A stretch of DNA of 44,493 bases from Caecitellus pseudoparvulus (GCA_965644315.1 CBFFRQ010000161.1:1-44493), one strand, 5' to 3'. Positions 1 to 22,366 are shown, counted from the first letter of the stretch. Numbers and translations are program-made. Notes: a model not told the origin generated them from the sequence alone.

Positions 1-112
1 ATGTTTCTTGCTGGAACCGTATGTCGGGCGACATACCGACATACCGCACCGGTGCCCGTATGTCGACAAACCTCTTAGAAGTGTCGGTATGGCAGATTTA
101 GCGACATTCTGA
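1..112. repeat. Left TIR and subterminal CGACAT/ATGTCG repeat array of the outer element
   Basis: Hairpin ATGTCG-GG-CGACAT at 21-34; CCGTATGTCG at 17-26 and 56-65; AGCGACATTCT at 100-110, also present at 15012-15022. Confidence 0.85.
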
Positions 113-573
113 CAAACAATTTTCTCGTTTGAGCACCCCCACCCCACCCTGCCGCGCTCCGCACCCGTAGCCCGCCCGGTGTGATTGAAGCAAGCTTTGC
201 ATGGAATGCATTTTGTTGATATTGTATCTGCTTTCTATTATTGGATTTCTGCTCAGGAGGTGGTAAGCGCGCCACGTGCACTTGTGAGAATGAACTGTGA
301 AGAGTGCAGGGCGGTATGAGGTAAAATCAGTAGCATGCATGCGATTTTCTTACTTGTTTCGGTCGTTTTGGTTCTCGTCAGCTCTCGTTGGTCTTCCACC
401 TGGGGAAACTCGCGAGGGGTGAGTGAGGCTAACGGTTGCGTTACAGCTGAAACGTGTGGACACACCTGAGCCAAATTGTGTGGGTACTTGCGAGGTTTCG
501 TCTGTCATCTGCGAAGGGGGCAATCTAAGTCTTGTTAAGGTCTCAAATCCATTTGTTTTGAATTGATGAGTGG

Positions 574-2080
574 TTACTTTCGCCTTCTGCGTGAGCGCAC
601 CCCCTCCCGCTCCTCCGCCTCCTCCTCCCCTTCTCCTTCTCGGGACCTCCTCGTGCCCCCAATGATGGCCTGTGTGCGCCCAGATGATGGCGTGGGCGCA
701 ATGCTTGTAAGTTCGGCCAGGGATCCCTCATCTGAACTCTCTTCTGGTGTTTGATCTATTGGAGACGCGCTGTGCTCCCCACCAGAAGCCAGCTCTTCTC
801 CACGATGCATGTGATTCACCACCCAGGCAAGCCTGGGGGCCGTCCACTGCTCCACGCGGAGCAAGATCCATGCACCTGCAATGATGGGAAGGAGGTCGCG
901 CAGCTGCTCTGTGCGGAGCCTGTGGAAGCCTGGACCCATGTTCACCTCGGTGCAGCTGATGAGGGGGGCTTGAAGGGACGCATGTTTACTCTTCAGTCCA
1001 GAGTTCCACGCTTTAGCACAGGCCAACCAGAGGTTCTTCATGGCTTCTTCCTCTGGAAGCAGGTCCTCATGCGACTCCTTCAGCGCCACAGTTTGGGACT
1101 GGTCCAGGAGGCGAGGGATGTGCACCGTCCAAGGTCCATCCGGGGTCATGTATGTGCTGAAGTTCTTGAAGTTCGCTGCCCAGATTCGCTTGACCTGCGA
1201 AGAAGAGAGTGTGCCCGACTCGCCTTTCCAGCTGACGAAGCACTTGAGTTCACGGGTGATGTACTCCCTCCCACAAACTGGCTTGTACAGCTTGATGTCC
1301 ACGAGCTCCAGGATCAGGGGTGGGTCGGTGCGCGGGCCTGACTCCGACCCAGCTGAGCCTTCAGACAAGTCCTTGCACTCCTTGTCTGCGCATGCCACCA
1401 CCTCCTGGGGGCGGCCCTCGATGGTGTGGTGCTGAGGAAAGAAGCGTTTTGTCCTGTTGGATCGGGTCATGGAGATTCGCACGTGGTTCCTGAGGAGGGA
1501 CTGACTTGCGAGCAAGCCATCCCCTTGACAGCACGCCTCGTCCTGCAGGAGTTCAAGTAAAGTGTCGTCATCCCCCTCGCTTTGCGTCAGAGTCAGACCT
1601 TTCTGGTGCGTCTCGTTCACGTTGATCACCATGTTATCGAGTATGTTTGCGTGACAGGAAAGGAGCCCAGCCTGCGCATGTCTGGTTGCATCGGACATCA
1701 CCCTGAGAAGGCCCTTTTTCCAGGCATCAGCCTTAACCCCTTGATCGCGAGCATTGATGACTGCTTTGCGCAGAGGGCACTGAGCAGCAATCGCGACGTC
1801 CTTGCTTGAGGATGACAGAGTCTTTCGAGAGGAGCTTGCCTTCTGCTCTTTCTCTACGCGTTCAAGTCTCTCTAACATCACCAGCAGCATCTCCAAACGA
1901 GTGGACTCGCTCAGTTCAATCCCTGTGCAAGGGAAGGAAGATATATGCGCGCCAGCTCAGCTTATCAGCTCAGCCTTGGGAGTGGGTGGCAGTTGTGGTT
2001 GCCTCAGCCGGCAAATGCAGCGCCTACCCTCTTCTGGAGCAGGAAACTCCAACTTCTTGCACAGAATTTTCGTGATGCGC
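574..2080 (-). CDS. Accessory protein of the outer transposon, unknown function, spliced; 5' exons unresolved (possibly up to ATG 2419)
   Basis: 440-aa ORF extended by a phase-compatible GT-AG intron at 2027-1923 (...PAPEE-G-IELSESTRLEM...). Ends in an acidic tract plus basic RSRRRRK (NLS-like). Divergent from the transposase. Confidence 0.65.
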
Positions 2081-2520
2081 CTGTTGTGTGCGGTGGATGC
2101 TGTGGAGTGGGGTGGGGGCAAGCATGGTTGCAAGACCAAGGGTGCGGCTTTTGAATGGGATTCAGCAAGACACACATGATGACTCCATGGCTGAGCAGTT
2201 GCTTCTCAGGGCTTTTGCGCGAGCAAGAAATGCACTGGCACTTGTCTCAAGAGTTAAAGCGTGCAGTGTAGTGAAAGTGTCACGTTCTGTCTGTGGTGCG
2301 CCGTGTTGGTTTTGAAGGGTCAACGATTTCCGCAACTCGGGCTTGCCTTCGATTGACTGGGCGTCTGGCGGACAAAACCTATTGAATTCCGAGCCGCTTG
2401 CTGCTACAACTATTCTCATAAAACCTCTGCAGCTTTTCCGTCCGTCGTTCCTCTACTCAGTGCTACTTTATCTCGTATTGCGGGTTCGACAACGCACTTC
2501 GCGGCCCTTCCGAACTGACT

Positions 2521-5500
2521 ATGGCTCATTCGCCCCTTCACGCCGAGAAGCCCCACAAGTGCGCAACTTGTAAGCGTCTTTTCAAGCGAGTATCAGACCG
2601 CAATCAGCACCTCAGGCGTAGCAGGGCGTGTCGGGCAGAGGCGGCGCGTCAACAGAGGGCATGGCTCCAACCATGCCCACTGGCTCAAGAAGAACGGGAT
2701 GATGGGGGTACCTGGGGGGGGGCTGACGACACTGAGAGCCTGTCTTTCACTGATACAGTTCTCGACCAGACACAGTTCTTTCCTGATCTGGTGTCGCAGA
2801 CAGGGGCGGGGGCCGCGTCAAGTCGGAGCCTTCCTTGCAGTGAAGGAAGTGGCTCCGACACCTCGTGGGAAGAGTTGGAAGGGGAGGAGGTAAGTGAAAG
2901 CGACGAAGGTGAGCCGGCCTTGTTCACAGGCAGGAACCTACATGCGGAGGGGGAGGCGCAAGACGTTTCAGTTGGTCGACAGCAGGCCCAGGGCGTGACT
3001 GTGTTTGACGGCGTTGGACCCCCACCCCTCTCGACAACGCGCCCGAGGGTCGCTTCCAACCTGAACATGAACGCGGTAAGATGCATCCGGGAGGTTGCTG
3101 AGGCCAGGGCCCGCTTCTCTCGGGAGGATGCGGAGAAGTTCGACTTTCTTGTGAGGGTGTATCGCACCGGGCTGTCGGCTGCGAGTGCATTTGCCATCGC
3201 TCGTGACCAGTGGGCAAAAGATGTTCACAGATTCGGCAGGGAAGGAGACCCGAGATGTAGCATGTCTAGGCCTATCAAACCACTAGACCTCTTGGCCGAT
3301 TTCCGACACAGGGCAGCATCAGATCCAGGAGTGCTGCCCTTGTGCGCTCACAAGGTTCCAATGCCCATAGGCCTTCTCACAGGCGACAGAAGTCTGGGGC
3401 ATCTAACCCTGTATGGCACAAGTATCGTCGACGCAGCGATTAATATGCTTGCCCGACTGGACCCCCTGCGGCTGCTGCCCAACATAGGGTCTGGAGAATG
3501 GGCGGATCCCGTCCTAACCCCAGGGGTTGACGTTGAAATGGGGGCAACACTCGCAGGTGAGGTCTCCGCCGCTTGGACACAGTCTGATGCCATATGCCAA
3601 GCTGCCTTTGACACTCAGTGCAGGCAACGATCCAGTGCTGGTCGTTGCAAGCCTCCACCCCCACCTCTATCGACGCCCATGCTCCGAAAGCCGGCGGTGC
3701 AGGGTGGGAGGCTGCAAGGCCTTGTCATGGCTGGCGTGCAGGCTTCTTCCCCCTCCACACTCTCCGAATTCCAAGGGGGGGAATGCGCGCGGCAGAGCTT
3801 GGCACTTACCCTCCCACACGGTGCCCTCCCCTTAGTCCTCAGTCTTTTCCTAGACGGGGCCAGCGCCGGACGGCATGGGGCACACGAGCTGACACCTCTC
3901 AGTGTTCGGTGCCTTCAGTTGCCGACCAAAGAGGCGAGGGGAGTCGCATCAGCTAGTCTGCTTGCCATGCTCCCTTCATACCAAGCCATGACTGTGGCGT
4001 CGAAGGCTGTCGAGAGAGGGGGGGCATCAGCAGCTCTCGTTAGACATCGGGCATTTCAGAACACCTTGGAAGCCATTGTCTTCAAGCCCTTGGCAAACAT
4101 CTGGGCTTCCGGGGGTTTGGCCGTCCCTGTTCCCCACGAAGCCATACAGAGTCTCCGGTCGATTGGGGTTAAGGTGACTGTGGTCCACCACGCAGGAACG
4201 AGCGTACCATATGCCCGAGTCTTGCCCGTCATCGGACTCCTAAGTTTGGACATGAAGGAAGCCTGGAGGGTCTTCAACCTGTTATCATTGTCCCAGGTGG
4301 CCTGTAGATGCAAACCGAAACAGGAAGGGACACCAACGGACTTGGGAGTGTCTGCATCTGTCCAATTACGCACGCAGTGCCGGCTACGTGGAGGCCAAGA
4401 GCACCTCCTTGCACTGCGAGGGTCACAAGGGCAAGAGCCCGGACAGGACGTCGACCAGGTTCTGGGTGGGCGGAAGTTCCCAAGTGACGTGTGTGCGGCC
4501 GAGCGATACGCGTGGATGTTCGCCGGGGAAAACCCGTACGTCGCGCGCCCTCCTGACCGCTTGCACGTCTTTGCGGCAACTATTGCGGGCGATCAAGTCT
4601 GGAAGCACTTGCAGGCAGCGATGAGGGCACGCCCAGCACGGTCTGCTCGGCCATTGAGAGAACGACAGGACATTCTGCACCAACGTCTTCGAAGCACGTG
4701 GTCCCAGGAGGTCGACGGGACGAAGCTTACCGGAGCGCTCCAGTCCACCATCCATAGACTTCTTTCCAGCGCAATGTTGAGCATGGAACAGAGACTTGGA
4801 ATTCTCCCTCACCTGGCCTGGGTCATTGGGAATGACGACTCAATTATTCCCAGCGTTGAAGTGCGACAGCTCTTTCAGTTGCTTCTTGGCACAATCGAGG
4901 TCGTGTGCCACTTCCTGTACGTGCGGCCTGTGTCTGCACCAGGTGACCCATGTCGCATCTCTCAGTGGCTAGCGAGACTGAACACTGTGTACAGTTTGCT
5001 GGCCGCACACGTCGCTCGCCGATCCCTGAAGCGAATGAGGCCCGGGTTCAGCAGACCAGGGGCGCATGCTGGCCTTCCGATGACAACGAATGCTACCCCA
5101 CCCGACCCCCAGAGCGTGGACTATCCTAAGGCACACGAGAGTCTACACTTTGGAAGTGCATTGTGGTGGTTTGGGTCCCTTGAAGCAACAGATACTGATG
5201 TCGGCGAATCATTCCACACCGTGGTCAAGGGGGCATGGCGAAGCCTCAACACAGGGAAGTCCAATCTACTCCAGCGGATCGCCGAGCGAGTACTCTTCAT
5301 AACCTGGCACAGCAGTTTTGACCTCCTGCCGACGCCATTCGAACGACGCGCTTCTGAATGGCACACAAGGTGCCTCTCTTGGCGCGCAGCGTGTGTCCTA
5401 AACCCTGATGGAGTTGCATACTCAACCCTGGCAACCCCCGTGCGATCTCGACGATTGACGTCGAGCGAAGGAAACCTCTTATCCCGCATACCTGACGGTG

Positions 5501-5598
5501 CCATCCAACCATTTAGTGCATGGACTGGCAAACATGTCTTCTTTTCCCAGTCTTTAGGCTTGTCTGTGAGGCTTCCAGCTGGGACACTTGTTGGGCCC
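2521..5598 (+). pseudogene. Plavaka-like transposase 1, N-terminal 1026 codons, interrupted by the nested element (reads through to a stop at 5715 inside the insert)
   Basis: C2H2 finger (CATCKRLF...HLRRSRAC), acidic linker, then LFLDG, SLDMKE, PPDRLH and YPKAH...FGSLEATDTDVGESFH motifs recalled as typical of Plavaka/CMC DDE transposases. Confidence 0.85.
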
Positions 5599-6176
5599 CA
5601 GTCAAGAGATTTTCTGTCCCCCCCGTACACCCCTCCAACACCACTTCGTTCCCGTGTGCGGGGGGGGTGGGCACACCTTCCCGGGCGCGTCAGAAGTTGG
5701 AAAAAGTCAAAATGACACTATTTCATGTGTACATTGTGTCAAACTCGTTTCACGCTGCGGGAGCCGCGGCGGGCCGCGCAATGGGAAGGGGTGGATTGGC
5801 GTGGTGGCGACGGAGGGCAGGGTCGGGGGCCGAGGGAGGCAGACTGATCAAATTTTCTGGTCATTCTGGCGAAAGTCACAGAGGGGGCTAAGTTTCATGC
5901 TTAGATTCAGATTATTGCACTCACGCGTGATGGTTCGCCTTGCATAGCGCAGGAGAACGCCGCAAAGTGGGCCATTTTGGGCGCCAATTTCCGCCTCCAC
6001 AGCCGGGCGGCAAACTGCCTGCGCCAACTCCCTTGCACCGCAGCGCTGGCGCGTATGAAGGCGATTTACCGCCTTTGCATTGCATTTTAAGCGCCATGCA
6101 CGATTCATTTGTCCGATGCAGCCCCCCCCCTTGACGGGCTGTCTTGGGCTGCCTTGGGCTGAGTGGCGAAGCCGTC

Positions 6177-9100
6177 TCACGTGTCCTCGCTGGCGCTGCG
6201 CTGCTTGCCGACGGGGCCCTGCAGCGCCCAGTGGAAGCGGTAAGAAGCTTCCCCTGGCTTGCCCTTCGCGATCCAAGGCGCTTCGTGCACAACGGCCGGG
6301 CCAGCTACCACACCCCCGTCACGAGCACCCACGGTTGCGCCTCGTCCTCCGGCGAGTGGTTTACCCGTGCCCACCCCTGCACCTCAGAAGGGCCCAGTTT
6401 CAGGTGACGACACAAGAGGAGGGTCTCATCGGGCAGGTAACTGCGTGCATCGTCCCTCAGCGGCGCCAGGGCCACGGCTACGTCCACCAGTGTCCGCTCC
6501 ATGAACCGCTTGCCGTCCCAGTGGATGATGCACATGACGTCGGCTGGCCCCGGCAATGGCAGCCAGTTGGTGTTGCCAGAGGGGTACCGCAGCCTCACGC
6601 CTGTGCAGAGCGTGAGGGGGGGGCGGTGTCCCGCTTCCTGTCCATCCACGACGTCGTCAGGCTTTAGTTGCACCCTGTACAACCTGCCCGAATGCCCCAC
6701 CCGCCGCTCCCTCAACCACGCCAGGGCGCTCGCCCCTGCGACGAAGGACTGCGGGAAGGTCAGTGGCTCATCAGCGCTCCTGAATCGCGTCACGATCGGC
6801 CGCATGGCCGTGCCCACCAAGTTCAGTGGCACCTCAGCGCCTGGGTCAGCAGCAGCCCCGGCACAGTCGCCGGCGACCAGGGAGCGAGAATGCAATAGGT
6901 TGTACCAGGTCTCGGGGGAGGGAGTGTAGCCTGGCGGTTGACAGTACGGCGCGCAGCTCATGGCCTGCACGAGGCACACTCTCTCCGCCAGCTTGTAGAG
7001 GACACCCTGCTTCCCGCGGTGCACTGTACGTAGCACACGGTTGATTCGAGTGTGCATGGTCTCGCCGTGGTCGGTATCCACCGCCTCCAGGCTACCGTAC
7101 CAATGCATGTCCAGCGCCAGCTGCAGCGCAATGTGCAGCTTGGGGTACGTGAGGGGTAGAGCCTTCCGGCCAAGGGAGCGCAGCTCGTTGCTGACGAGCT
7201 GGAACACGGTGGCCACACGGGCCATCCACTGGGCCAGACGGCACGCGTCACCCCGCCCAGCCACTGCCCTGCCGTACGTGAAGCGCAGGACCACGCCCAC
7301 GGCCCCATGCAGTGCGTTCAGCAGTTGGCGGACCTTGGGCGGCCCCACGACGGCGTCGTCCGTGCCCATCATCAGCGTCTGCCACCGAGTGAGCCCCAGC
7401 TTGTCCTCTGCTGTGACGGCGTTGCCGGCCGACAGCTTGACCGCCGTCTCCCGCCCCGCGCCGACAACCTGTACGCCGTCGATGCGGCGCGGACGCGGCT
7501 GCTGCATGCGGTGCATGAAGGTCGCTTGGCGATCGTCCTGCGCCCCGAGGCCAGGCGCGAGCATCCCCTGCTCCAAAGCACCCCATGTCCGGTCCCCCAC
7601 CACCCCGCTCCCCAGCACATGCAGCCTGTCTGCAGGGCAGGCCTCGTAGCCATTGCCCCCCACAAACAGCGTCGCATGGCGCTCAATGTCGCAGATATCC
7701 TCGACGTCCTTCCACCTGATCGTGGCAAGGTCGGCCTCCGCCCGCGCCTTCACGACCGGATCGGCAGACGCCACGTCACGCAGCGCGTCGGCGTGGAAGG
7801 ACGCCGAGCGCCGCGTGCAAGTCCCCAGCGCTGCCACGGTCTCGGCCATGTCGAGGGGCACGGCGTCGGCCAGCTCTTGCTGGCCTTTGCTGCGCCACGC
7901 CAGCGCGCACGAGCACCGTGGAGGCCTGCCGTGAACCGCATTGAGTAGCATCCATCTCTCAGCCGTGTCGGCGCAGATGGCGCCGATGAGCGGCCACACA
8001 CGGGCAACGAACGAAGGCCCATCGACCCCCGCCCCCGGCTCAAGGACATCGACGCCAAGGTCCCGCAGAGCGCCGACTTGGTCGGCTGCTACCGGGATCC
8101 ACAGGCCACCCTGAGCGTGGATCTCAGCAAGAGGCTCCAGCAGCACAGCGCGGAGCTGGGCCTGGTGTGCCTTGTACTTGGCGCGCTTCGCCTCCTCCGC
8201 GGTCCCTTTGAAGTCCATGTCTTTCAGCGGCATGAAGGCAAGGACTGCCGCTGACCCCAGGCTTCGGGCCTCTCGGGCACTAACTTGCATGGGCCGGACG
8301 CTCAGGGGCGTGATGCCCGTCTTCGGTTGGCGGAAAGGGTGGGCCTCGTCCATGAAGACGTTGATGACAAACGGCAGGGCGCGGTGTTGCAGAGCTGTCT
8401 GTGACGCCGCATGAGCACACGGGCTTTCAGCGAAGCACGACACGGTGCCGTCTTGGGGTTCCTGGGCGCCTGCCATCGTGTGTGCCTGAAAGCGGCCATG
8501 CTTCGTGAACGGAGCGGCCAAGGCGGGGGTTTCGTCGTCGCTCAACCCAGGCCGGTGCCTTTGGAATGCTGCACGCGCAACCGCGTCGCAGTCTGCGAAG
8601 GCGGCCTCGAGCTTGCTCGCCAGCGCAGTCCCCATGGGCGTGTCAATTCCCGACGTGTGCATGGGGTCTGGGACGCCCCTTGTGGCCCGACGGGCGGGCA
8701 AGCACTCAACAGGTATCCGAGCCAGCGAGTGGACAAGCCAATCCTTCAGCTTCACGCCGTGGATGGGCCAGGTGGCACGTGGCACTCCACGCCGGTCGCA
8801 CACGCCGGCGGGCATCTTGGCGTGCACCACCCCCGGCATGCAGATGCCAGGCAACCCCTTGAGTGTCTCGACCAAGCGCTTCATCTTCCTCTGGGGCTGC
8901 ATCGGCTTCCGTGCTCGAACCTTCGCCTGACAAGTGCTGCAGCTGGCTGTGTCTGCCATGCACTTCGACCAGAGATCGTGCTGCACTTTGAACACCGAGG
9001 CGGCACTCGCATCGGTGGTCAGTATCGCCTCCAGCTCAGAGTTCCTCTTCCTCAGTGTCTCCAGCTCTTCCGAGAGCAAGCCCACGCGTGCCCGCAGCAC

Positions 9101-9550
9101 CTCAGTGGCTGAGTGAGTGTCGGCTGGTAGAGCAGCCGGCTCGCCTGCCTCTCCCGCTGCCTCTCCCGCCTGAGCGTCTCCCCCGCTGGCCGCAAGCCCA
9201 GCAGGCAGGGTCTCCGTGGCGTCGGCCCCGAACTCGTCCGCCCCATCACTCTCGCTTTCCTCGGTCTCATAGTACTCGCTGTCTGCGTCCTCCTGGACAG
9301 GTGCTTGCGCAGCCCCAGCGTCCCCACGCGGGTGCTTCCGATGTGAAGCAAGTGTATGCTCGTAGACATCCTCCCAGATGCCGGGCGCAGGGCTGCCCCC
9401 GTCCTCAGAGTGCTTCGCAAACTTGGCCTCAAATTCGCGCCTACGCTTTCTCCTTCTGGCGTGGGTCACCTGTTGGCACTGCCTCTGAAAGTGACGGGTC
9501 AAGCCTGATTGGGTTGAGAACGTCCGCTTGCACACAGTGCACGTGAACAT
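6177..9550 (-). CDS. Plavaka-like transposase 2 with a single-base frameshift near 6313-6322
   Basis: ATG 9550 (MFTCTVCKRTF...HFQRQC, C2H2-type finger). VFMDE, CADTAE, PADRLH and YPKLH...YGSLEAVDTDHGETMH are collinear with transposase 1. The last about 45 aa (VVAGPAVV...SYRFHWALQGPVGKQR) lie in a second frame and align with the transposase 1 C-terminus. Confidence 0.85.
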
Positions 9551-9959
9551 CGTGGGTGTGGGATGCTGCTTGGCAGGGCCTGGTCCGGAGGGAGAGCTCG
9601 AGTTGCGTTTCAGTATCTGAAACGTGCCTAGGGGGCACACCAATCCGGACTTCACAACGCAACCAACACCACCGCGGCGGCAAGAAGCACACCTGCGCTA
9701 GTGGTTGATGTGCATTCGATCCCTAGCGTTTGTGAAAAGTCCCCCTGTAAGCCTGGAACGCGAGGGATACAAGGAAGCTTGCTGCGTTTTCCCTTGAGAG
9801 GGGGGTGCAGGGGGGTGCAAGGGGGGAGGGGGGGTGCCTCACGCTGCTCTGTAAGCCAGCAAGGCGCAAAGGCACATTCCAGTCCCCCCCCCTCTGTTAG
9901 TCACTTGCTCTTCTCGGCCACCTTCAGCTCTCAAGCACCCGTCTCCCCACCCAGACACC

Positions 9960-12033
9960 ATGGCTCAGCAACGCAGCGAAGTCAGCACGAGCTCAGTGCC
10001 TCAAGCCACCGCCGCCGAGCATGACTCTGCAAAGCGAGCGTTCCAGGGCGTGCATGCGCATCTTCAAAGGATTGCCTTTGAAAAGGGCAAGCCCTTGCCC
10101 ATCCCGGAGCGCAAGGTTTGGTTGGCGGGCGCCAGCAACGCAAATGGTGTGCTGCGCTGTGAAACGCTTCCCCACCACGCGCGCACAAAAGCACCAGTGC
10201 TTACCGCCCAGTCCTTGCCCGCGCCGCAGAAGAGTTCCTTCGCGCAGAAGTGCTGGGCCAGCTTGCTAAGCCGCCGCATGAATTGGACATGCCCGGTGGT
10301 GGTGGTGCGTGACATACCAACGCGAGACTAGGATGGCGTTCCCACCAGCCTTTGCCCGTGTCGAGGCGTGCGGCTTCAACGCAACACCGCCTGAGTTTAC
10401 ACGCGATCTGTGCCCCCTTTCCGCAGCAGACCACTCCAGTGGAGAGGCCAGGAGCTTCCTTGCCGCGGCCGTCCTGCCCCGCGTTCCCAACGCGGCAGCC
10501 CTCGAGGCTCCAAGCCTGACCGACAGGGTGATAGCGGCACAGGCGAGCTTGGCGTTGGATCGGGCGCTGATCTACCAACTGTACGTGTTGTACCTGTACA
10601 GTGTGAAGGAGAGGGCCCAGATGCAAGCTCAGATCAGGGAGCTGCAGGGCGCACTTGACAAGAACGGCAAGTCCAGTCGGAATTCTCCGAGTGTCCAGTA
10701 CAGCCGTCTGTCCATGTCCAATCACATGGACGCCATCGGCAGGCAGAGGCTCCCTGGACAGGGTTCGTGGACGTTTGCACAATTAAAGGCAGGGTCGGGG
10801 TGGGGGGTGCCGCCGACTACTCTCACACTCATGTGCACCAACGCAGCCCTCCGGGTACCGGAAGGGCCACTTGGCTCCCCTGACGATGTCTACGAAACGC
10901 TGATAGCGGACGCCGACCTTGAAACGCCGGAGCTAGACTTCCCTCTGGCCTTCATGCACGGCATGCCCAACGCACTGGAACAGGCGCTGTCAATCCAGCT
11001 GGCAGATGGCGCTGATCCCTGGGACGACGCCAAAGACCTGATGCGACAGGCAGACCCCGGGCAGGTGCGCGAGGCGTGCAAGAAGCTGCGCGATGCAGTG
11101 TCGCGGCTCTTCCAACCCAGCGCACTGTCCAAGGACGAAGCCTTTATGGAGGCGGTGTCTGTGCTCTGCCCCGCCAGGGAGGCGGAGGTCCTGGTCTGCA
11201 CGCGACACAGAAAGCAGCCGGCCCACGACGCATTCCTTGACATCAGCTCGCGCTTGGACGGCACGGGGCAAGCTGCCCAGGATGCTCTGCGCTACCTGAC
11301 TTGGGCGGATCGAGGGCGCAACGTGCTCTCGATGGAGGAAGTGCGCCGCAGGCAAACTGCGCGCTTTGCTGCGGTGCGCGACTTTGCCACACCGGACGCC
11401 CCGTTTGACTGCGCCACGCTCGTGGCAGTCTCCTTGGAGCAGGAGTTGCGCAGGGGGCTCGCCAAGGACGCGGGTGTGTCCGTGAGGCGCCAGGACGTCG
11501 TCACAGCGGCGGCACTGGGGGCGCTGTATGAAGCTGCGGTGCATCTGGTGGACACGGTGCGCAACCAAGCGTACAGCTTTGTACGCAGCACACCGCCGTT
11601 CCCTCACACGTGCGAGTGGCACAAGCTCTCCGCCGCCCAGCTGTACACTATCGGCGCCGTGCTCGGGCCATTGTGGACCTTCTTGCGCGGGGAGGAGGCC
11701 AGCGCCTCCACATGGGGCTTCGTCACCCGGGCCTTCCGCGCTACACTTGTGAGGGATGCCCGTGAGCGTTCGAAGCTGGCCCAAGCATGTGCCAAGGAAG
11801 CGCTTGCGCAGCACCCCGTGGTCAGCACTGACGGCAGTGCCGAGCTGGGCCCCTGCCCGGGCCAGGGATCGGATTCAGGCTCGGGTTCAGGTTCCGAGTC
11901 TGAGCATGAGCCTGGTGCCGAAGCTTCCGGTGTGCTCGGAGACGGCGGGGCGGTGCTGGGATGCGGAAGGTCCCGCGGCACAAAGCGCCCGCGCGGCGAC
12001 GCAACGCCCCCGAGAAACATGTCGTTGGAATGA
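9960..12033 (+). CDS. Accessory protein of the inner transposon, predicted 622 aa, unknown function
   Basis: Exons 9960-10146, 10230-10304 and 10427-12033 join in frame through two phase-1 GT-AG introns (1869 nt). Coiled-coil-like segment; C-terminal GS/acidic tract followed by TKRPR (NLS-like). Divergent from transposase 2. Confidence 0.72.
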
Positions 12034-13111
12034 TGATAAGTACCCTCGGTACAGGGCATCCATATCGTGTGCGTATGCCTGCTCTGAGGCTGGTGACACC
12101 GCAACACCACCCATATCCCCACCGCACGCCCGTCAGCGCAATGCAAGCTCTTCCGGCGTGCCAGCGTTCGCTTGCGTGCAACACCCCCAGCTTGGCGCTG
12201 AGGAACAGCTGCACCCCTGTGGCCCATGCAACCACCACACCACTGGAAGCGCACCCCGCCTGGCCCTTTGCCCGTGTGACAAGGAAGCAGCGGACCAGCA
12301 TCAGAAGAACCCACCCCCCCCCCCCCCTCCCCCCGTCCGCATAGGGACACTTTCTAATCCCAGCGCAAATCTGAACGGTGCAAGTCAAGTCCCCATGGTA
12401 GCGTACGTTTGCACATGGCCTTAGCCTCGGCCTGCCTGTCGCTGCACGAGTACACAGAAGTGAGCGGCGCACAGCTTGCGTGCCGGGCGTTTCGCCTGCA
12501 ACGGCATGGGACATGTCACCTCCTCCGCTCCCGCCTGTCGCCCTCTCCTGCGCAGTGAGCCGGATAGTGTCGTGAAGAGCTGTACACCTCATGGCCTGCA
12601 GACGCCATCGCAGGCTGCAGGTTCGTGCAGGGGCCTAGCACGCGGGTTCAGCATTGGCGTTGCAAAGCCGAGTCACACACAGACCCCTCTGCGTGCAGGC
12701 GCCCCCCCACCCGAGCTCCCCCTGCCAGAGCATGCCCTTTCGAGAAACTTGACCTTGTTGCATCGCGGACTGTGCTCCATGGATGGCTTCAGCGGTGCGT
12801 TGGGACAGGGGTAGCACCCGCCTATGCGCGGCGTTTGCGCGAAACGCCGTGTCATGTTCCAAGGCACCCCCGCACACTCGTGCCAGCCCCAGCGCCGCAG
12901 AAAAGACACCATTGATATGATGTTTGTCGGTACCTATTGAAAGCGCGGCAGTTTCTTGTGAGGGTGGGTGGGACTGCATGCGCCGGGCGCTGGTGCTGCC
13001 TGCCTCCAACGCCACCCCTCTGCGCAGGCGAACTCCCTCACCCGCGACGCACACACACCACCCCTCTGGCCATTCGCAGGGCCCACTTGGATGATCCAAG
13101 TATCTCCCTGA

Positions 13112-13652
13112 ATGCCGCATACTGTACTGGGATGGCCTGAGCGGTGCGTGGCCGTCATGCGCTCGTCCCCATGCCTGGCGTTGCAGCCGGTGCCTGGCAC
13201 TCCCACACCATCACCCGAGCCACTGCCGCCCCTTCACAGGAATGGAAGACCCGGCAACCTGATCATGAGGGGCAAGTCCCACCACGGTGCCAGCCAAAAT
13301 GGGGTGAGTGCGAGGGGCTGCTGCGCTGGTGCCTTGTGCAGGGAGCGGCTACGTCGTGACTGCTGGTGTCAAGGTACAGAGCCACGCGAGCCTCCTCCCC
13401 CCACCTGCGCAGGCCTTCCGGTACGCGATGCTGCAGAATAACTGGTGTACCACCCTGAATGACTTGGAGAGGCTCCCCACAGTGCTTGGCGGACTGAGAG
13501 GTGCGCGGCGGCAGAGGCGGGCGGCGGCAAAGGCGCGTGGCCTGAGGCGTGAGTGCTCCGAGGCGGGTGCCGTGGACGCAGGGCATGCATTGCAGTGCGC
13601 GACACCGCCTGGTGACAGTTTGATGGCCAGCGCGAGCTGCAAGGTGCCGTAG
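13112..13652 (+). CDS. Possible third small spliced gene (111 aa) or gene relic in the inner element
   Basis: Exons 13112-13143, 13240-13303 and 13413-13652 join in frame via strong GTGCGT..CACAG and GTGAGT..GCAG introns. An upstream intron-like segment (about 12964-13079) and an in-frame stop just before the ATG suggest it may be a relic. Confidence 0.35.
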
Positions 13653-13694
13653 ACCCCCCCCCCTGCCTGCAATGCACAGCCTGCTACCAGTTCG

Positions 13695-13849
13695 CCTGGG
13701 TACCCCCAAAGTGGGTGTTTGCACCACCCCCCCCCCAAAGTGGGTGTCTGGCCCACCCCCACAAAAAGGAGTTTGCCCCACCCCCCTATACCCCTTCGAG
13801 GGCAACCCCCCAAAGGCATGTCGCCCCCCCCCCGAAAATCTCACGACGG
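13695..13849. repeat. Right subterminal repeats and TIR of the inner element
   Basis: CCCCAAAGTGGGTGT occurs twice (about 13704 and 13733), with multiple C-runs, ending GAAAATCTCACGACGG. The left end (5615-5680) is similarly C/G-run rich. Confidence 0.75.
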
Positions 13850-13851
13850 CC

Positions 13852-14340
13852 GAGCCCCTCCTGCGAGACAGAACACTGCAGATCTTCACCAAAGTGAGGT
13901 TGCGTTTCCCATCAGGAAACACCAACATGATCTCCCTTCCAGCCTACCTCGACACCGTCGTGGAAACACCTTTCGAGGGACAGGACCGGCGAGCTTTGAG
14001 CCCAATATTGGCAGTCCTGTGCTTCGCCCCTGCACCGCCTACAGTGGCCACAGCCTCCGGAACACCAACACCGGATGCTGACAACGGCGAAGTGTACATA
14101 CTGTATACGGACCTGAGACCGACAGTCACAGATGTTTCTGGGTGGGTACGAGTCGCGAAACCGGATGCAGGCAGCCGCGTGGCGCTCATGAACTGCACAA
14201 GCATTCGTGGGGAGTCGGTGGTTGCATTGCGGCCGTCCTTACTTCAAGAAGAGGATGCCACATATTTGCACCACTGGCTTCAAGCCGGACTGGCGGGCAA
14301 GCAGCGCCAAACATCCCAGTCCAGGCGATGGAGACGATAA
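13852..14340 (+). pseudogene. Displaced C-terminal 162 aa of transposase 1
   Basis: VRLRFPSGNTN...VSGWVRV...YLHHWLQAGLAGKQR aligns with transposase 2 VRLRYPSGNTN...VQGWARV...YRFHWALQGPVGKQR. Confidence 0.9.
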
Positions 14341-15011
14341 GCCGGGCCACCTCGAAGTCTCAAGGCGGCGGACCAGTGTCCAACCCACGAACAATACCTT
14401 ACAGGTGGGGGTAGAACTTGTCGCAATGGTGTACAGAGTTGTAGGATGCAGTTGAAACAGCGCCATGGGTCACTTCCTGACAGGGTCACCCCACTCGAGA
14501 CCACCTCGAGACACTCAGAGCAGACCAGACTCGAGCCTCTGCGGGGGCACCATGAAGCGGGAGAGGCGAACACGGCTCATACTGCCCGAAAGAGCCTGGC
14601 ACCATCCAGGAGGTCATGAGAGTCCATGTGGAGCTTGCTCGCATGCCCTCCGTTGCGCGCAGCTCAAACCCTGTACATGGGCTGGCGCAACAGAGCGTGA
14701 GGGTCGCTTGGGCTGGTGATCCAGCGAACTTTGCAACTTCATATCTGGGCAACCACTGATATTCAGAGAAATCCACGCATATCAGGGAAATCACACGACA
14801 CTACTCTTCCGATTGGGACCTTAAAATTAGAAAATTATTTTTTTGGGCTGTGATCGCCTTCTTGCCAGGGCCCTTCCCAGAGGCCCAAATAGAAAACCTC
14901 ACGTGACAAAAAAATAGTCCAACACAGCTAATTACATGGAATACACCAACCCGAATACACTCTTAGTTTTTTCTGCAGGATATTCTGTGCTGAGATATCG
15001 TGAAGAGAAAA

Positions 15012-15083
15012 AGCGACATTCTACCGACATACGGTGTGTGTCGGTGTGTCGCCCGACATGCACCCCCCAAAGAAACATGACGG
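15012..15083. repeat. Right TIR and subterminal repeats of the outer element
   Basis: CGACAT/GTGTCG array that is the reverse complement of bases 1-44; terminal GACGG. Confidence 0.85.
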
Positions 15084-16860
15084 AAAGAGCCGGGAGGGGC
15101 TCGCATGGGGTGAAGCCATGGGACTGAATGATTCGCCTCAGCTGAAAGCACTCCGTGTGCTGGAGTGGGCTGCTGCAGAAGCCCGTGCAGGCACGTTTGC
15201 GCGCACACGGTGGCTTGCCCTGCTGGACGAGGGCATGCTGGTGCACATTCCCCGCCTGCAGCAGCAGCTGCGGTCACTGGCAGACGTGGAGAACAGCACA
15301 TTCATCGGGCACCGCGAGCCAGAGGGGCACTGCTCAGGGCAGCTGCCTGTCCTCGTGAGCATCAGCAGCCTGAAGGCAGTGTACTTGCCTGCCGTGCCGC
15401 CGCCCAGCCGAGGACTGGGCAGGGCCTGGGCAGAGCACCTGCAGGACTTGCTGTGGAGTCACACAGGCCACGAGGACGGGCGACGTCAGTGCAATGACGG
15501 CCTGGCGCCCAGCAGCGTGCAGGCGCTGGAGCGTGCGTTTCAGAGGCCCAGTGGTGAGGAAGGGGCGGCGCTCGCGGCAGATGCCCTGCTGGAAGTGACC
15601 AGTCCACTGCTGTCTGCATCTGCGGTGGGGCACCTCTCCAAGGTGGATGCGATGCGGCTGGCATCGCGCTGGTCGTTGTTCAGTGCCATTCAGAGTGTGG
15701 CTCCTCATGTGCTGCAGGGGGTGCAGCCGGAGTGGCTGACACCGTTGAAGGCGCCCGTGCAGCAGGCAGATGGGGAGGTGTGGCTGTCTGCCGTGGATGG
15801 GAACAACCTGCTACAAGAGCCAGTACCTGTCACTACGAAAGGCTTGCCAACAAGCGCATTCCTCGCCGGCGTGCGCAGCCATTTGAAGAAGCTATATCCC
15901 AACCTTTCGCTGAAGTCGGTCACCCTGCTCTGGTGTCGAGACTGCATCACAGCCACCGTCCTCGCATCGCTGCCCGCCCCCTACAGCAGTGTGCTGCAGC
16001 TCCAGCTGCCCTTGCCGTGGAGGCCAGACTTCATCGCCCTGCAGACAGCTCCATCATCGTCCGTCAGCTTCCACATTGCAGTGCCCTTCGCATGCAAGTA
16101 CGACACCTTGCGCAGCATGCTGTCCAGCACGGGTGCCGCCCTGGCCTCAGCGGGGGTGGTGGCCACTGTGCACGTTGGGTGGTCTGCGTGTCCGGGCCAG
16201 GAGCCAGGTGCCGAGTCAAGGCACCAGGTGGAGCTGCAGCGAGACTTCTCCACGCGGTTCATGCAGGTGCGGTTTGTGCCAGTGGCGACCCCCATGGCGC
16301 GGTCTGTGAACTGCAACGCAGCAGCTGCTGGTGCCGCTGCAGGTGCTGTGTTGGCAGTCATCGATGTGGACATGGAGGTGACAGCTGGGTTCTTCCTGCG
16401 GGCTCTGGCGCTGACACAGGAGGGGGCAACGGCCTACTTCCCAGTGGTGTGGTCGACATACAGCGCAGACGCAGTGTCAGCAGTCGAAGAATGGTTCGGA
16501 AAAGAGTTGCCCCCGTTCTCGCTGTACAGGGGAAGCTGGCGCAGCTACGGCTTCGGCATGTTCACCATGTACAAGTCCGACTTTGACCGGGTGGGGGGCT
16601 TGGACCCCGCATTCCAAGGCTGGGGCGGGGAGGACTACGCCTTCTACAAGAGTGTCAAGAAGGCCGGCATCGTCGTGCTCCGGTCAGAGGACAGAGGCAT
16701 GGTGCACCGGTGGCACCCCAAGAGCTGCGAGGGCGTGGCGCCTCAGCGGTATGCGAGCTGCATCGCATCGTGGGCGGGGCAGGAAGGGTCTCCGCTGGGC
16801 GTGCTGTTGAAGCATGCGGAGCACAAGCTGAAGCCTGAGGGTAGTGTTGGTGTGCATTGA
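15084..16860 (+). pseudogene. Transposon-interrupted copy 1 of the chondroitin-synthase/CHGN-like glycosyltransferase (3' part)
   Basis: Near-identical to 17684-19460 but lacks the first about 127 codons, including the signal anchor, which the transposon has displaced. Confidence 0.85.
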
Positions 16861-17303: not shown

Positions 17304-19460
17304 ATGGGAGTATCCTGTAAGACTGCGAGCATTGCCGGCTGCTGGGCCGCGTGCCTTGCATGCAGCCTCCTCATGTTGTTTAGCAGCTATGTCCGTCTGT
17401 CTGTGCTGCCTTTGCCTTCGACGGACAGCACACGATCGCTGAGGGTGCAATTGAATGACTCGAGCGGAAATTGGATTCTCTGGCACAAAACAAGCAAGGA
17501 AACAGCCAGTCGGCAACAAGTGCGCATTGATCCTGGCCAGCAGCTTGTCACGCCTCTCTGGGCCGTGTCCGATGCTCGTGCAGCAGACCATGTCGGCAGC
17601 CAAGCCTTCAATGCCCTGCGGTCAGAGCTGCCCACATTCGTGCTGTGCCCAAAGGGCGTCGTGCAGAGCCTGGCACCGGCGACAAAGAGCCGGGAGGGGC
17701 TCGCATGGGGTGAAGCCATGGGACTGAATGATTCGCCTCAGCTGAAAGCACTCCGCGTGCTGGAGTGGGCTGCTGCAGAAGCCCGTGCAGGCACGTTTGC
17801 GCGCACACGGTGGCTTGCCCTGCTGGACGAGGGCATGCTGGTGCACATCCCCCGCCTGCAGCAGCAGCTGCGGTCACTGGCAGACGTGGAGAACAGCACA
17901 TTCATCGGGCACCGCGAGCCAGAGGGGCACTGCTCAGGGCAGCTGCCTGTCCTCGTGAGCATCAGCAGCCTGAAGGCAGTGTACCTGCCTGCCGTGCCGC
18001 CGCCCAGCCGAGGACTGGGCAGGGCCTGGGCAGAGCACCTGCAGGACTTGCTGTGGAGTCACACAGGCCACGAGGACGGGCGGCGTCAGTGCAATGACGG
18101 CCTGGCGCCCAGCAGCGTGCAGGCGCTGGAGCGTGCGTTTCAGAGGCCCAGTGGTGAGGAAGGGGCGGCGCTCGCGGCCGATGCCCTGCTGGAAGTGACC
18201 AGTCCACTGCTGTCTGCATCTGCGGTAGGGCACCTCTCCAAGGTGGATGCGATGCGGCTGGCGTCGCGCTGGTCGTTGTTCAGTGCCATTCAGAGTGTGG
18301 CTCCTCATGTGCTGCAGGGGGTGCAGCCGGAGTGGCTGACACCGTTGAAGGCGCCCGTGCAGCAGGCAGATGGGGAGATGTGGCTGTCTGCCGTGGACGG
18401 GAACAACCTGCTACAAGAGCCGTCATTCATCTCAACAAAAGGCCTGCCATCCAATGCGTTCCTCGCCGGCGTGCACAATCACCTGCGCAGCCGCTACCCA
18501 AAGCTCTCCCTGAAGTCGGTCACCCTGCTCTGGTGTCGAGACTGCATCACAGCCACCGTCCTCGCATCGCTGCCCGCCCCCTACAGCAGTGTGCTGCAGC
18601 TCCAGCTGCCCTTGCCGTGGAGGCCAGACTTCATCGCCCTGCAGACAGCTCCATCATCGTCCGTCAGCTTCCACATTGCAGTGCCCTTCGCATGCAAGTA
18701 CGACACCTTGCGCAGCATGCTGTCCAGCACGGGTGCCGCCCTGGCCTCAGCGGGGGTGGTGGCCACTGTGCACGTTGGGTGGTCTGCGTGTCCGGGCCAG
18801 GAGCCAGGTGCCGAGTCAAGGCACCAGGTGGAGCTGCAGCGAGACTTCTCCACGCGGTTCATGCAGGTGCGGTTTGTGCCAGTGGCGACCCCCATGGCGC
18901 GGTCTGTGAACTGCAACGCAGCAGCTGCTGGTGCCGCTGCAGGTGCTGTGTTGGCAGTCATCGATGTGGACATGGAGGTGACAGCTGGGTTCTTCCTGCG
19001 GGCTCTGGCGCTGACACAGGAGGGGGCAACGGCCTACTTCCCAGTGGTGTGGTCGACATACAGCGCAGACGCAGTGTCAGCAGTCGAAGAATGGTTCGGA
19101 AAAGAGTTGCCCCCGTTCTCGCTGTACAGGGGAAGCTGGCGCAGCTACGGCTTCGGCATGTTCACCATGTACAAGTCCGACTTTGACCGGGTGGGGGGCT
19201 TGGACCCCGCATTCCAAGGCTGGGGCGGGGAGGACTACGCCTTCTACAAGAGTGTCAAGAAGGCCGGCATCGTCGTGCTCCGGTCAGAGGACAGAGGCAT
19301 GGTGCACCGGTGGCACCCCAAGAGCTGCGAGGGCGTGGCGCCTCAGCGGTATGCGAGCTGCATCGCATCGTGGGCGGGGCAGGAAGGGTCTCCGCTGGGC
19401 GTGCTGTTGAAGCATGCGGAGCACAAGCTGAAGCCTGAGGGTAGTGTTGGTGTGCATTGA
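17304..19460 (+). CDS. Type II membrane glycosyltransferase, chondroitin GalNAc-transferase/synthase-like (CHGN, GT7 C-terminal domain), 718 aa
   Basis: N-terminal hydrophobic anchor; IDVDM (DxD), AYFPVVWSTY, WRSYGFGM, YKSDFDRVGG, FQGWGGED, HRWHPKSC. Confidence 0.85.
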   Translation: MGVSCKTASIAGCWAACLACSLLMLFSSYVRLSVLPLPSTDSTRSLRVQLNDSSGNWILWHKTSKETASRQQVRIDPGQQLVTPLWAVSDARAADHVGSQAFNALRSELPTFVLCPKGVVQSLAPATKSREGLAWGEAMGLNDSPQLKALRVLEWAAAEARAGTFARTRWLALLDEGMLVHIPRLQQQLRSLADVENSTFIGHREPEGHCSGQLPVLVSISSLKAVYLPAVPPPSRGLGRAWAEHLQDLLWSHTGHEDGRRQCNDGLAPSSVQALERAFQRPSGEEGAALAADALLEVTSPLLSASAVGHLSKVDAMRLASRWSLFSAIQSVAPHVLQGVQPEWLTPLKAPVQQADGEMWLSAVDGNNLLQEPSFISTKGLPSNAFLAGVHNHLRSRYPKLSLKSVTLLWCRDCITATVLASLPAPYSSVLQLQLPLPWRPDFIALQTAPSSSVSFHIAVPFACKYDTLRSMLSSTGAALASAGVVATVHVGWSACPGQEPGAESRHQVELQRDFSTRFMQVRFVPVATPMARSVNCNAAAAGAAAGAVLAVIDVDMEVTAGFFLRALALTQEGATAYFPVVWSTYSADAVSAVEEWFGKELPPFSLYRGSWRSYGFGMFTMYKSDFDRVGGLDPAFQGWGGEDYAFYKSVKKAGIVVLRSEDRGMVHRWHPKSCEGVAPQRYASCIASWAGQEGSPLGVLLKHAEHKLKPEGSVGVH

Positions 19461-19864
19461 GGAGGGGGCGGGTGAGCTGGAGGGTGCCAGGCGTGTGGCT
19501 GTGCATCGCAGCGATACCCATGCATGCGAGCTGCTGCACGTGGGCTTGGTGGCAGTATCATGGGCTCTGGAATCGTTACAACAGGACTGTTCCTTGCCGA
19601 GGGTCTCAGGAGCATCAAGCAGTCATGTACCAAACAGGAGTGAAGGTTTACCATCCTTATGCCGAACAGGTGTGCAGTGGGGGTGGGGATTGACCTCTTT
19701 GCGTACACAAGATTCAAAGCGACTGGGTCCTGCGCTTGTTCTCTCACGCATCCTGCCGGACTATGCATGAGAAGTTCTGCAATACACCTTGCTCTTGCCA
19801 GTGGTGTGCTGGGGCGGCCATCTTCAGTAATCCAATGCTCTTGCCTGACATGCATTGCTGCACC

Positions 19865-22366
19865 TCAAACACCTTGCCCGTCCCGCACTCGCGTCTGTGC
19901 CCAAAGTCCAGTCGATCGTCCAAGCTTCAAGGGGTGCACGAACACGTGCTTATTGGGTTTGAAGGAAGACATGACTGCCACAGGGTCCTGGCGCGCCCTG
20001 CCCCAGACCTCAAGGGAGTTTTGTCCAGTTGGCAGGTCGCTGCCCCGACACAGCGCCACGATTGGCACTGAGATCTCCAAGCTGACTTTGTGGGCGAGGA
20101 GATCAACAAACAATTGCACTGCCTCCGGGTCCAGGGGCGACGGCCAGAAGTGTGAGTCGCAGGCGCCTTTGGGGATGGCACCCTTCCGGGCGTGACACCT
20201 GTGCAAGGCTGCACGCACAGCGGGACTTGCCGCTGCGGCAGAGTTCAGAGCCGCCACTCCACTGGGATACGATGCCCAGCTCCAGGCCTTCCCTGCTTCA
20301 GTGACAGTCGTGACGTTCGTTTGAGGATCAAACGCGAAGTTTGACCAGCCTCCTTCATGACAAAAGAGCACGCCAGGCTTGTTCGCCAGCCGCTTCTGCA
20401 TCAACTGCACATTCACGGCAGAGTCATCGTGCAAGAACAAGAAACCTCGTGAGGGGGTCGCCTCATGAGTCATCGCATGTAGCAGTGTTGAGTACGACTG
20501 GTGGCCGCCGTCCACCTCGCCTGCAGTTCGCCACCCATCAGGCCACTTTACAGATCCAAGGGCACTCGGTACAGCCGCAGGCCGAATGCCCACTTCACAC
20601 ACCACACGGACCCCAGTCCCTCGAGGCAGGCCAGGGACTGTGCACTCCTGTGCACCTGGAGCGTAGAACACGACATCTGAGAACATGCCGTCCCACACCG
20701 AGAGCCAAGCCGGGATGACGTGCAAGTGCCCAAAGTTAATGTGCACCACAGCGGTCACCCCTTCGAGCAGGGGCTTTTCCCTTGCGACGCGTCCAATCGT
20801 ACTCGTAGGTGGGAATAGCGCAGGGGCTGGCCCGGTGATGCCTTGCACTGCTTGCACCCACTCCCCTGCCCACAGCACATCACGCTCTTCCAAGACGCCC
20901 CGCTCGTACAGAAAGACATAAAGGTCCAGGGCGGCGTTGGCCACGTTGCTCGGTGCTCTGGGCTTCCACTCCTGCAGTAAGCGCCCCAGCACACCAGCCT
21001 GTGCATACAGAGGCTGTTCAGCGTCCAGGTCGGCAAGGTAGTTGTGGGGGTTGCGGTGGTGCACCACTGCGCCAGACGTCACCGCCACCGCCAGCCCTGC
21101 AACCTCTGCGATGCGGTTGGCAATGAGGGCCCGCCAAATGTCCGCCACACGACCATGGACTGTCATGGGTAGCATGGCGAACAGCACCACATCGCGGCTG
21201 AGCAAAGTGGCCTGGGCGTTGTGGGAGACTGTTGTTCCGGGGCCCAGAACGCCCAGGACGCCTAACTTGTGCTCGAAGTCCACAGGCGCGGGGCCAGTCA
21301 AGCGCTGCACCGCGTCAAGATCTGGGTTCCCTTGTGCCAGGCTGCTGAGGATGCCAAGACAGGAGCACTTGGCTCCCACAGGAATGCAGCCCGCCGACTC
21401 GGCGCCCTGACGGAAACAAGGTTCCGGAACTGTCACGCGGGGCAAGAATGTGCCTGCATCCTGGACTTGCTCCAGGGGCGTACCACGGGGCCAGATGAAC
21501 GAAGTTGCGCCCATCAATGGCAGGTGGTTCACCCAGGGTGTGGTAGCCTCTCCTCCAGGTGAAAGCTGCACGGCTTTGCCCGCCCAGGAGCGCAGATCTG
21601 TCGAATTTAGTAGCCCATGACTGCCATCCAGAAGCACGTTGTCGTCATCAAAGTCCCAGATGAAGCAGGCGCCCGCCTGCAAAGCTGCCAAGTACCCGTA
21701 GTTCTTGCGCCCAAAGTGGTTCCACGGTGGCTCAAAGCGCCCAAACACGTTTTCACTCTGGTGCTGCACAGTGAGGTAGTGCACGTTTGACGGGACACCA
21801 GTCCAAGATACTGGGCCCTTCCTATCCGCCACCACGAATATGTCCACATCAGGGCGAGCGGCAGCCAGGCTTGCCACCGCCTCCGTGGCTTCCTTCGCAA
21901 TGGTTGTGACCACCGCAGCGAAAGGGCGAGAAGTCGAACACTTCGGTCGCGAAGGCACTCCTTGATCCGATTTTCTTGCCCAGTCAAGCAAGGCAGAAGC
22001 AGTGCTCGAAATCTCTCGGAAGGGCTTGCCACTGAAAGTGGCGCCGGAAGTAGCGGTGCCAGCCAGGGCATGGTTTACGTGGACACTACCTCCAGCACCC
22101 TTGAAAAAGTGGCTGGCAGACGAGGATCCAGCAAAACTTTGGTCTGATAGGGTTGTACCAGCGATGCCGAGCACAACCAGCAGGCAGAGCATGGCTGCCA
22201 CAAAGGCTGACTTCCAACTTGGCGTTTCGCATCGCCAGGTGTGAACGCAGCGTTGAGTTCCTCGCTGCGTGATGGACGTGGCAGCAGAGACATGAGGGGA
22301 ACGAGCTGATGCCGGTTTGCCTAAAAGACTCTCTTCTTCGTCTTCGATGTGCTCTCCTCTCTCCAT
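19865..22366 (-). CDS. STELLO-like (DUF288) glycosyltransferase, type II membrane protein
   Basis: TM anchor; VVTTI, VVADRKGP, PWNHFGRKNYGYL, IWDFDDDN, WPRG, NPDLDA, TVHGRVADIWR, RNPHNYLADLDAE. First ATG at 22366. Confidence 0.88.
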   Translation of the reverse strand: MERGEHIEDEEESLLGKPASARSPHVSAATSITQRGTQRCVHTWRCETPSWKSAFVAAMLCLLVVLGIAGTTLSDQSFAGSSSASHFFKGAGGSVHVNHALAGTATSGATFSGKPFREISSTASALLDWARKSDQGVPSRPKCSTSRPFAAVVTTIAKEATEAVASLAAARPDVDIFVVADRKGPVSWTGVPSNVHYLTVQHQSENVFGRFEPPWNHFGRKNYGYLAALQAGACFIWDFDDDNVLLDGSHGLLNSTDLRSWAGKAVQLSPGGEATTPWVNHLPLMGATSFIWPRGTPLEQVQDAGTFLPRVTVPEPCFRQGAESAGCIPVGAKCSCLGILSSLAQGNPDLDAVQRLTGPAPVDFEHKLGVLGVLGPGTTVSHNAQATLLSRDVVLFAMLPMTVHGRVADIWRALIANRIAEVAGLAVAVTSGAVVHHRNPHNYLADLDAEQPLYAQAGVLGRLLQEWKPRAPSNVANAALDLYVFLYERGVLEERDVLWAGEWVQAVQGITGPAPALFPPTSTIGRVAREKPLLEGVTAVVHINFGHLHVIPAWLSVWDGMFSDVVFYAPGAQECTVPGLPRGTGVRVVCEVGIRPAAVPSALGSVKWPDGWRTAGEVDGGHQSYSTLLHAMTHEATPSRGFLFLHDDSAVNVQLMQKRLANKPGVLFCHEGGWSNFAFDPQTNVTTVTEAGKAWSWASYPSGVAALNSAAAASPAVRAALHRCHARKGAIPKGACDSHFWPSPLDPEAVQLFVDLLAHKVSLEISVPIVALCRGSDLPTGQNSLEVWGRARQDPVAVMSSFKPNKHVFVHPLKLGRSTGLWAQTRVRDGQGV

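Follow-up and report, generated by a model that had tools for sequence, protein, structure and literature searches.

What kind of transposable elements make up the nest at the start of contig C161, where exactly do they begin and end, and what do they disrupt? The contig belongs to an assembly of 30.6 Mb in 215 contigs, and the window analysed here is its first 44,493 nucleotides, at the 5' end of which an initial annotation had described one Plavaka-like transposon inside a related one, itself inside a host glycosyltransferase gene. The nest is real and well delimited, nesting as such being ordinary.

The inner element runs from 5599 to 13849 (8251 bp, no strand assigned; ~8.25 kb had been proposed), with termini CAGTC...GACGG placed by comparison with other copies, and the dinucleotide CC flanks it on each side, at 5597..5598 and 13850..13851 (both +). 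The left CC is read from the empty site in C68, C147 and public sequencing runs, the right one from the excision join and the flanks of other copies. Excising the element together with one CC joins 2521-5598 to 13852-14340 and yields a frame of 1188 aa, the other three joins tried at this insertion giving shorter frames, and the same frame is uninterrupted in the copies of the outer element on C147 and C68. These two carry the empty site, identical in C68 and with one substitution in C147, and it is also present in contigs from three public runs. Five further copies of the inner element, full or nearly full and 98.7-99.9% identical, are found in its own genome together with older relatives at 70-94% identity, and homology ends at the same boundary base in every copy. 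The two-base flanks match in the window (CC/CC), in two copies on C18 (AA/AA and TG/TG) and on C40 (CA/CA), and are unmatched on C43 (TT/CA) and C170 (TG/CA), one of this last pair being an older copy and the other internally deleted; misassembly or recombination between copies would account for the mismatches. A duplication of 3 bp was rejected; the four inner copies with matched flanks show no 3-bp match. The C18 copies lie only 470 bp apart and have different duplications, suggesting local hopping.

Within the inner element, the 1.7 kb between ORF2 and the terminus (12034-13700) holds no convincing ORF and is retained in all full copies, and short GC-rich repeats follow at 13703-13785. The C40 copy is split by an AT-rich insert of ~18 kb (G000:C40:153362-171507; L006, L034) with ends of 24-26% GC. 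This insert carries a lipase-like ORF, has a terminal inverted repeat of 416 bp and a duplication of 5 bp, and resembles an endogenous virophage or Polinton-like virus.

The left part of the outer element occupies 1..5598 (+) and matches the uninterrupted copy at G000:C147:1-6829 at 96-97%. Judged from this copy (6829 bp, 96.4% identical) the whole element measures ~6835 bp, in keeping with the ~6.8 kb first suggested; the copy on C68 is partial. Its right terminal repeat (15010..15083, -), defined by the end of homology and a shared tip, ends in CCGTC on the minus strand, and this tip is identical on C147, C68 and metagenome contigs L051, L056 and L060. At the left, the terminal and subterminal repeat (1..110, +), recognised by its inverted match to 15036-15059 and carrying six copies of the motif TGTCG/CGACA, lacks its tip, the contig beginning ~5 bases inside it. 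The tip is absent from all three genome copies, two of which begin a few bases inside at a contig start and one of which is truncated, so the outer 2-bp duplication is not directly readable. We infer it from a complete sister element of 7027 bp on a metagenome contig (CCGTC...GACGG, flanked by TG/TG, transposase 56% identical), and predict the outer duplication to be AA. The initial annotation had a 2-bp duplication read directly and junctions fixed by internal empty-site references; the former stands for the inner element, and the latter for both inner junctions and the outer right one, leaving the outer left end out of each. The three termini visible in the window do all read C(A/C)GTC, as it had described.

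The same ends recur through the family. Those on C111, C133, C169, C50, C31 and C19 and on metagenome contigs read C(A/C)GTC(A/G), with one family C end from a metagenome lacking the GT; ends start with CA or CC, and CA is found at some ends only. Tabulation of the copies collected from the genome, as had been proposed, gives constant boundaries and a 2-bp duplication in five of the seven two-ended copies, the sister element included (chance probability 4.5e-5), and in no copy does homology run past the boundary base. TG or CA stands at 11/22 junctions against 17% expected (P 4e-4, in a tally made post hoc). At least four transposase families are present in the genome, inner, outer, family C and a fourth, clades having been counted on a quick tree of own-family members. 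Family C (~8 kb) is found on C190, C30 and C141, with a relative on C149. The fourth, ~25% identical to the inner enzyme and 31% to P0007, occupies nine places (C44, C15 twice, C19, C49, C60, C63, C69 and C102) and includes several open frames of 1000-1130 aa with identical scores, which are therefore probably also young. Some family copies are 99.8-99.9% identical. A family C element of ~8.0 kb at L050:2487-10495 has a left flank matching C18:495644-496630, where this genome has no adjacent element, and is likely a strain-specific insertion. Near-identical copies and strain-specific sites argue, as far as sequence goes, for recent activity, and as the ends of the families are alike over about five bases only, each family probably moves itself.

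At its right end the outer element abuts host coding sequence. Its terminus is at 15083, and 15084 opens the 3' part of an interrupted glycosyltransferase gene (CHGN / Glyco_transf_7C, 15084..16860, +; Pfam PF05679, E 3e-33), precisely where homology begins to an intact tandem paralog of 718 aa, also CHGN-type (17304..19460, +), which places the insertion point after base 17683, at about codon 127; sequence from 15084 onward is 97.6% identical to 17684-19546. The proposed insertion in a host gene is thus anchored at 15083/15084, the 5' part of the gene and the left junction being absent from contig C161. Since the outer left flank is unseen and the contig starts inside a repeat, the element could instead neighbour a partial gene copy that a terminal rearrangement produced, or the junction could stem from misassembly. 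We consider this unlikely, however, as the very next base past the outer terminus opens the homology to the paralog, a candidate for the 5' part of the gene on C76 ends 5 bases before the insertion point, and contigs of two public runs (organism A) begin exactly at 15084, as expected if the junction and an intact form coexist. In two other runs a contig passes unbroken from the 5' part of the gene into 15084. The run contigs fit an outer insertion carried by some strains only, but absence is beyond what contigs can prove, and those that cross may be the intact paralog. In the insertion order that we favour, the outer element would first have landed in one member of a tandem array of glycosyltransferase genes; the inner element would then have inserted at codon 1026 of the outer transposase, disabling it. 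Because this second insertion cut off the C-terminal domain, the outer copy in the window is probably dead; the C147 copy looks intact.

The window ORF at 15034-16860 was rejected as the start of the interrupted gene, as it begins inside the outer terminal repeat. Against its paralog the gene shows 33 differences in an 88-bp patch (15822-15909) and 11 elsewhere over 1863 bp, the patch possibly reflecting gene conversion from another paralog; further glycosyltransferase paralogs are located on C76, C210, C13 and C18. The remaining window contains host genes for a STELLO-like glycosyltransferase (19865-22426, -), a DOT1-like protein (22667-23740, +), an Agenet-domain ORF (23439-24545, +), CFAP52 (24589-26346, -; best named match Cafeteria roenbergensis, 57%), a TTL family member (35073-38915, -) and a protein with a trichohyalin-plectin domain (42135-43580, +). 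A 1333-aa ORF at 28070-32071, which has no Pfam match, includes Gly/Gln/Ser/Ala-rich coding tandem repeats of 12-nt and 186-nt units at 30871-31672. Protein P0132 (CAE7731898.1), filed under Symbiodinium sp. KB8, shares a 90% cluster with the window CFAP52, which suggests that DNA of this flagellate, or of a close relative, is included in the Symbiodinium sp. KB8 assembly.

Both elements encode a large transposase. Codons 1-1026 of the outer enzyme lie at 2521..5598 (+; as read in the window the ORF is 2521-5715, +) and include a C2H2 finger, D445, D577, H872-x3-H876 and E896, and its last 162 codons, the C-terminal domain, lie at 13852..14340 (+), in frame after excision of the inner element with one CC. 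The inner enzyme (6305..9655, -) has a C2H2 finger, D436, D563, H841-x3-Q845, E865 and a BAH-like C-terminal domain. It measures 1159 aa in other copies and 1116 aa in the window, where a C run near 6313 has one base less than its counterparts in four other copies and the frame closes 43 codons too soon; a consensus error is the probable cause. The two enzymes are collinear and align over 760 aa at 32% identity (E 4e-93), bearing out their description as divergent relatives. Of the codons that differ between the outer enzyme and its C147 counterpart, 59 are synonymous and 32 non-synonymous. The acidic triad, the DxxH motif and YPKxH are kept by all full-length members, and the N-terminal C2H2 finger by most. 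H-x3-H precedes the catalytic E in four of five sampled lineages (outer, family C, P0004 and P0007), the inner enzyme having H-x3-Q. The C(2)C position after the second D is C-x-C in most members and a single C in P0007, with C-x2-C slightly downstream in family C only; two other conserved cysteines could, to judge from the alignment, stand in for it.

The fold points in the same direction. In an AlphaFold model of the core (pLDDT 63, pTM 0.68) the first D lies at a strand end, the second follows strand four, and the E sits on a helix beyond a large insertion, a placement as in RNase H-fold transposases. The first 28 Foldseek matches are all RAG1, RAGL or Transib, none reaching E 0.001, and among solved folds VIA-align gives RAG1 at Z 11.2 (424 residues, rmsd 5.0), RAGL at 10.6 and Transib at 8.0. 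Over the final 190 residues the match is to BAH domains (ORC1 at Z 8.1, DNMT1, TNRC18). Models of Plavaka and EnSpm can be aligned across this stretch as well and probably have the BAH-like tail too. Among predicted structures in the Atlas the top full-length match is a fungal Plavaka+DUF6830 protein (TM 0.63 over 682 residues), followed by EnSpm Transposase_21 clusters (TM 0.54-0.58), and language-model neighbours resemble this ranking. The DDE/Plavaka similarity that the initial annotation required is borne out by the DDE residues and by Plavaka as best full-length predicted fold. The Pfam profile check that it proposed turned out otherwise, PF18759 scoring 16-18 bits on the inner core (E 1.6e-3) and 25.2 bits on P0007 (E 1.1e-5) under a cut-off of 26.3, with no match on the outer transposase. 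Plavaka is nonetheless the sole transposase Pfam family that the inner and P0007 proteins match; with E allowed to rise to 1-10, Transposase_21, DUF4216/4218 and TnpA-type families were still not matched, and PF18759 run across the genome gave no hit, control genomes being likewise blank. A search of 1.84 billion proteins returned seven matches, six marine-metagenome relatives and one repeat-like chance match, with no known fungal or algal Plavaka among them. The element itself occurs in marine metagenomes and, with Cafeteria as the best named match of CFAP52, the host is likely a bicosoecid-like stramenopile. Word-indexed protein searches found nothing beyond the element itself, scans of JGI metagenomes and viral contigs found no relatives, and a PDB sequence search matched zinc fingers only.

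A second ORF lies head-to-head with the transposase in the inner, outer, family C and sister elements. In the outer element its main exon (574..1922, -, ~440 aa) is an open frame with homologues beside the transposase in other families, and small upstream exons at ~2028-2099 and ~2176-2188 (-) were placed by eye from splice signals; inner ORF2 spans 9960..12033 (+), with a main exon at ~10330-12033 and a probable 5' exon from 9960. Searches used the main exons. Outer and sister ORF2 are 32% identical, and a profile built without the inner ORF2 retrieves it at E 8.5e-5 (best of 1000 shuffles, 0.22), from which we take inner and outer ORF2 to be distantly related. There is no significant Pfam or Atlas match for ORF2, and its predicted structure has a pLDDT of 40. 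Constraint on ORF2 is weak in the one comparison drawn, with 14 synonymous and 28 non-synonymous codon differences. Since the outer ORF2 has an H-x-L-R-like motif, a tyrosine recombinase was considered but gained no support: conservation of the Arg does not extend to other families, ORF2 has no Pfam match and the genome has no PF00589 match. By analogy with EnSpm, where TnpA sets a precedent for an accessory role (PMC13547354), and given the subterminal motifs, ORF2 may be a TnpA-like end-binding or regulatory partner, a guess to which we give an even chance.

To which lineage do such elements belong? They belong to the CACTA/Mirage/Chapaev/Transib (CMCT) group, membership of Plavaka being unproven. 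Markers of the CMCT clade are C(2)C, H(3-4)H, ends that are mostly 5'-CA..TG-3' and duplications of 2-5 bp (Kojima 2025, PMC12730594); here a DDE triad is present in a RAG1/Transib-type RNase H fold, and the 2-bp duplication is within that range. Against Plavaka itself the duplication fits, and the Pfam cut-off and the termini fail, PlavakaA having TGT..ACA ends with a 2-bp duplication and PlavakaB CATCA..TGATG ends with 2-3 bp (PMC12730594). The term 'Plavaka-like' is hence justified by the only transposase Pfam match and the best full-length predicted fold, but not by scores of 18 and 25 bits (below 26.3), by a Transposase_21 fold nearly as close or by the termini. The accompanying view of Plavaka as mainly a fungal protein family is outdated: whole elements, complete with termini and duplications of 2-3 bp, have been published (PMC12730594, PMC8290104), and Plavaka is known outside fungi in red algae (10.1101/2025.02.11.637652), in Spirogyra/green algae and other green plants (PMC13519894) and in Amoebidium (PMC11244446). 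The suggestion that no such elements had been described fails for complete Plavaka elements with 2-bp duplications and survives for C(A/C)GTC-ended CMCT elements, of which, as of Plavaka in a stramenopile, we found no report in literature of incomplete coverage with Repbase outside it.

An ordinary, fast-evolving Plavaka, forming a subgroup beside PlavakaA and B, would have the same mechanism, which makes this a filing question only, and we see it as evenly poised between right and wrong. The sole transposase Pfam match and the top structure match both point there, the 2-bp duplication and 7-8 kb size resemble PlavakaA, the ends share a GTC core with its TGTC, and Plavaka is now broad across eukaryotes; common to PlavakaA/PlavakaB and the elements here are also a CMCT-type DDE, a length of ~7-9 kb and short imperfect terminal repeats. 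Yet the scores stay below cut-off, the genome-wide PF18759 search is empty (with controls also blank), none of the fungal or algal Plavaka appears among the matches from 1.84 billion proteins, and the termini are neither 5'-TGT nor 5'-CATCA. A degenerate C(2)C, a probable stramenopile host and a conserved accessory gene, by Pfam unrelated to TET/JBP, further set the elements apart. The giant Plavaka of the red alga Bostrychia (10.1101/2025.02.11.637652) are likewise non-fungal, with accessory genes and defined ends, but are 17-19 kb long, carry three accessory genes (methylase/SET, ParB/2OG) and are mostly degenerate, whereas the present elements of 7-8 kb have one accessory gene and near-identical copies. 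A divergent EnSpm/CACTA lineage, with TnpD and a TnpA-like ORF2 and no relation to Plavaka, is improbable in our estimate: two genes, subterminal motifs, local hopping and Transposase_21 clusters at TM 0.54-0.58 recall it, EnSpm occurs in stramenopiles (the brown alga Ectocarpus), and some families resembling Plavaka proteins are classed as EnSpm (Kojima 2025, PMC12730594), but the ends are neither CACTA nor CAC, the duplication is 2 bp instead of the plant-type 3 bp, the genes are head-to-head, and neither PF02992 (Transposase_21), DUF4216/4218 nor a TnpA-type family is matched. It is conceivable, if rather doubtful, that the elements form a separate CMCT lineage beside Plavaka, ESTA and Lanisha, one that would combine its C(A/C)GTC ends with a remodelled zinc site and a preference for TG/CA targets, would depend on an accessory protein from a new family, and would still be transposing in a culturable marine flagellate. 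Transib/RAG1/ProtoRAG supply the closest solved fold (Z 8-11) but are only ~10% identical, and the BAH-like tail is a feature of the elements here. Transib has a 5-bp duplication and CAC(A/T) ends.

The explanation that best accounts for the whole, and which we regard as very probably correct, is that these are CMCT-type two-gene elements moving by DDE cut-and-paste with a 2-bp duplication, the outer having inserted before the inner. As the initial annotation had proposed for a flagellated protist, the DDE fold, ORF2 and duplications in 5/7 copies describe a two-gene cut-and-paste family of this group. Each element is bounded by short imperfect terminal repeats that open with C(A/C)GTC and carries two genes head-to-head, one for a transposase of ~1150-1190 aa and the accessory gene. 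The transposase would bind its own family's ends through the C2H2 finger and the subterminal motifs, the RAG1/Transib-type DDE core would cut, and insertion with a 2-nt target stagger would leave the 2-bp duplication, often at TG/CA; the BAH-like tail may, as a guess, read chromatin or bind DNA. Cut-and-paste with a 2-nt stagger would follow from the fold, the ends and the duplications. Counting against this explanation are the unmatched flanks in two copies, the unseen outer left junction, the degenerate C(2)C, the inner Q in place of the second His, and an ORF2 with weak constraint and a structure model of pLDDT 40.

Complete Plavaka elements with 2-bp duplications were already known; the novelty here lies in ends that read C(A/C)GTC, in an accessory gene shared between families and in the probable bicosoecid host. 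Plavaka-like CMCT elements are thereby extended to a probable bicosoecid, for which we found no such report in the literature, and the ends and duplication of the family are defined from several copies. The accessory gene is kept across families whose transposases are only ~31% identical. We found no transposition assay for Plavaka in the literature, and the intact, near-identical copies are a practical candidate for such an assay or for structure determination, Plavaka/EnSpm being part of the source group of RAG1. The BAH-like tail, finally, suggests a testable link between these transposases and chromatin.
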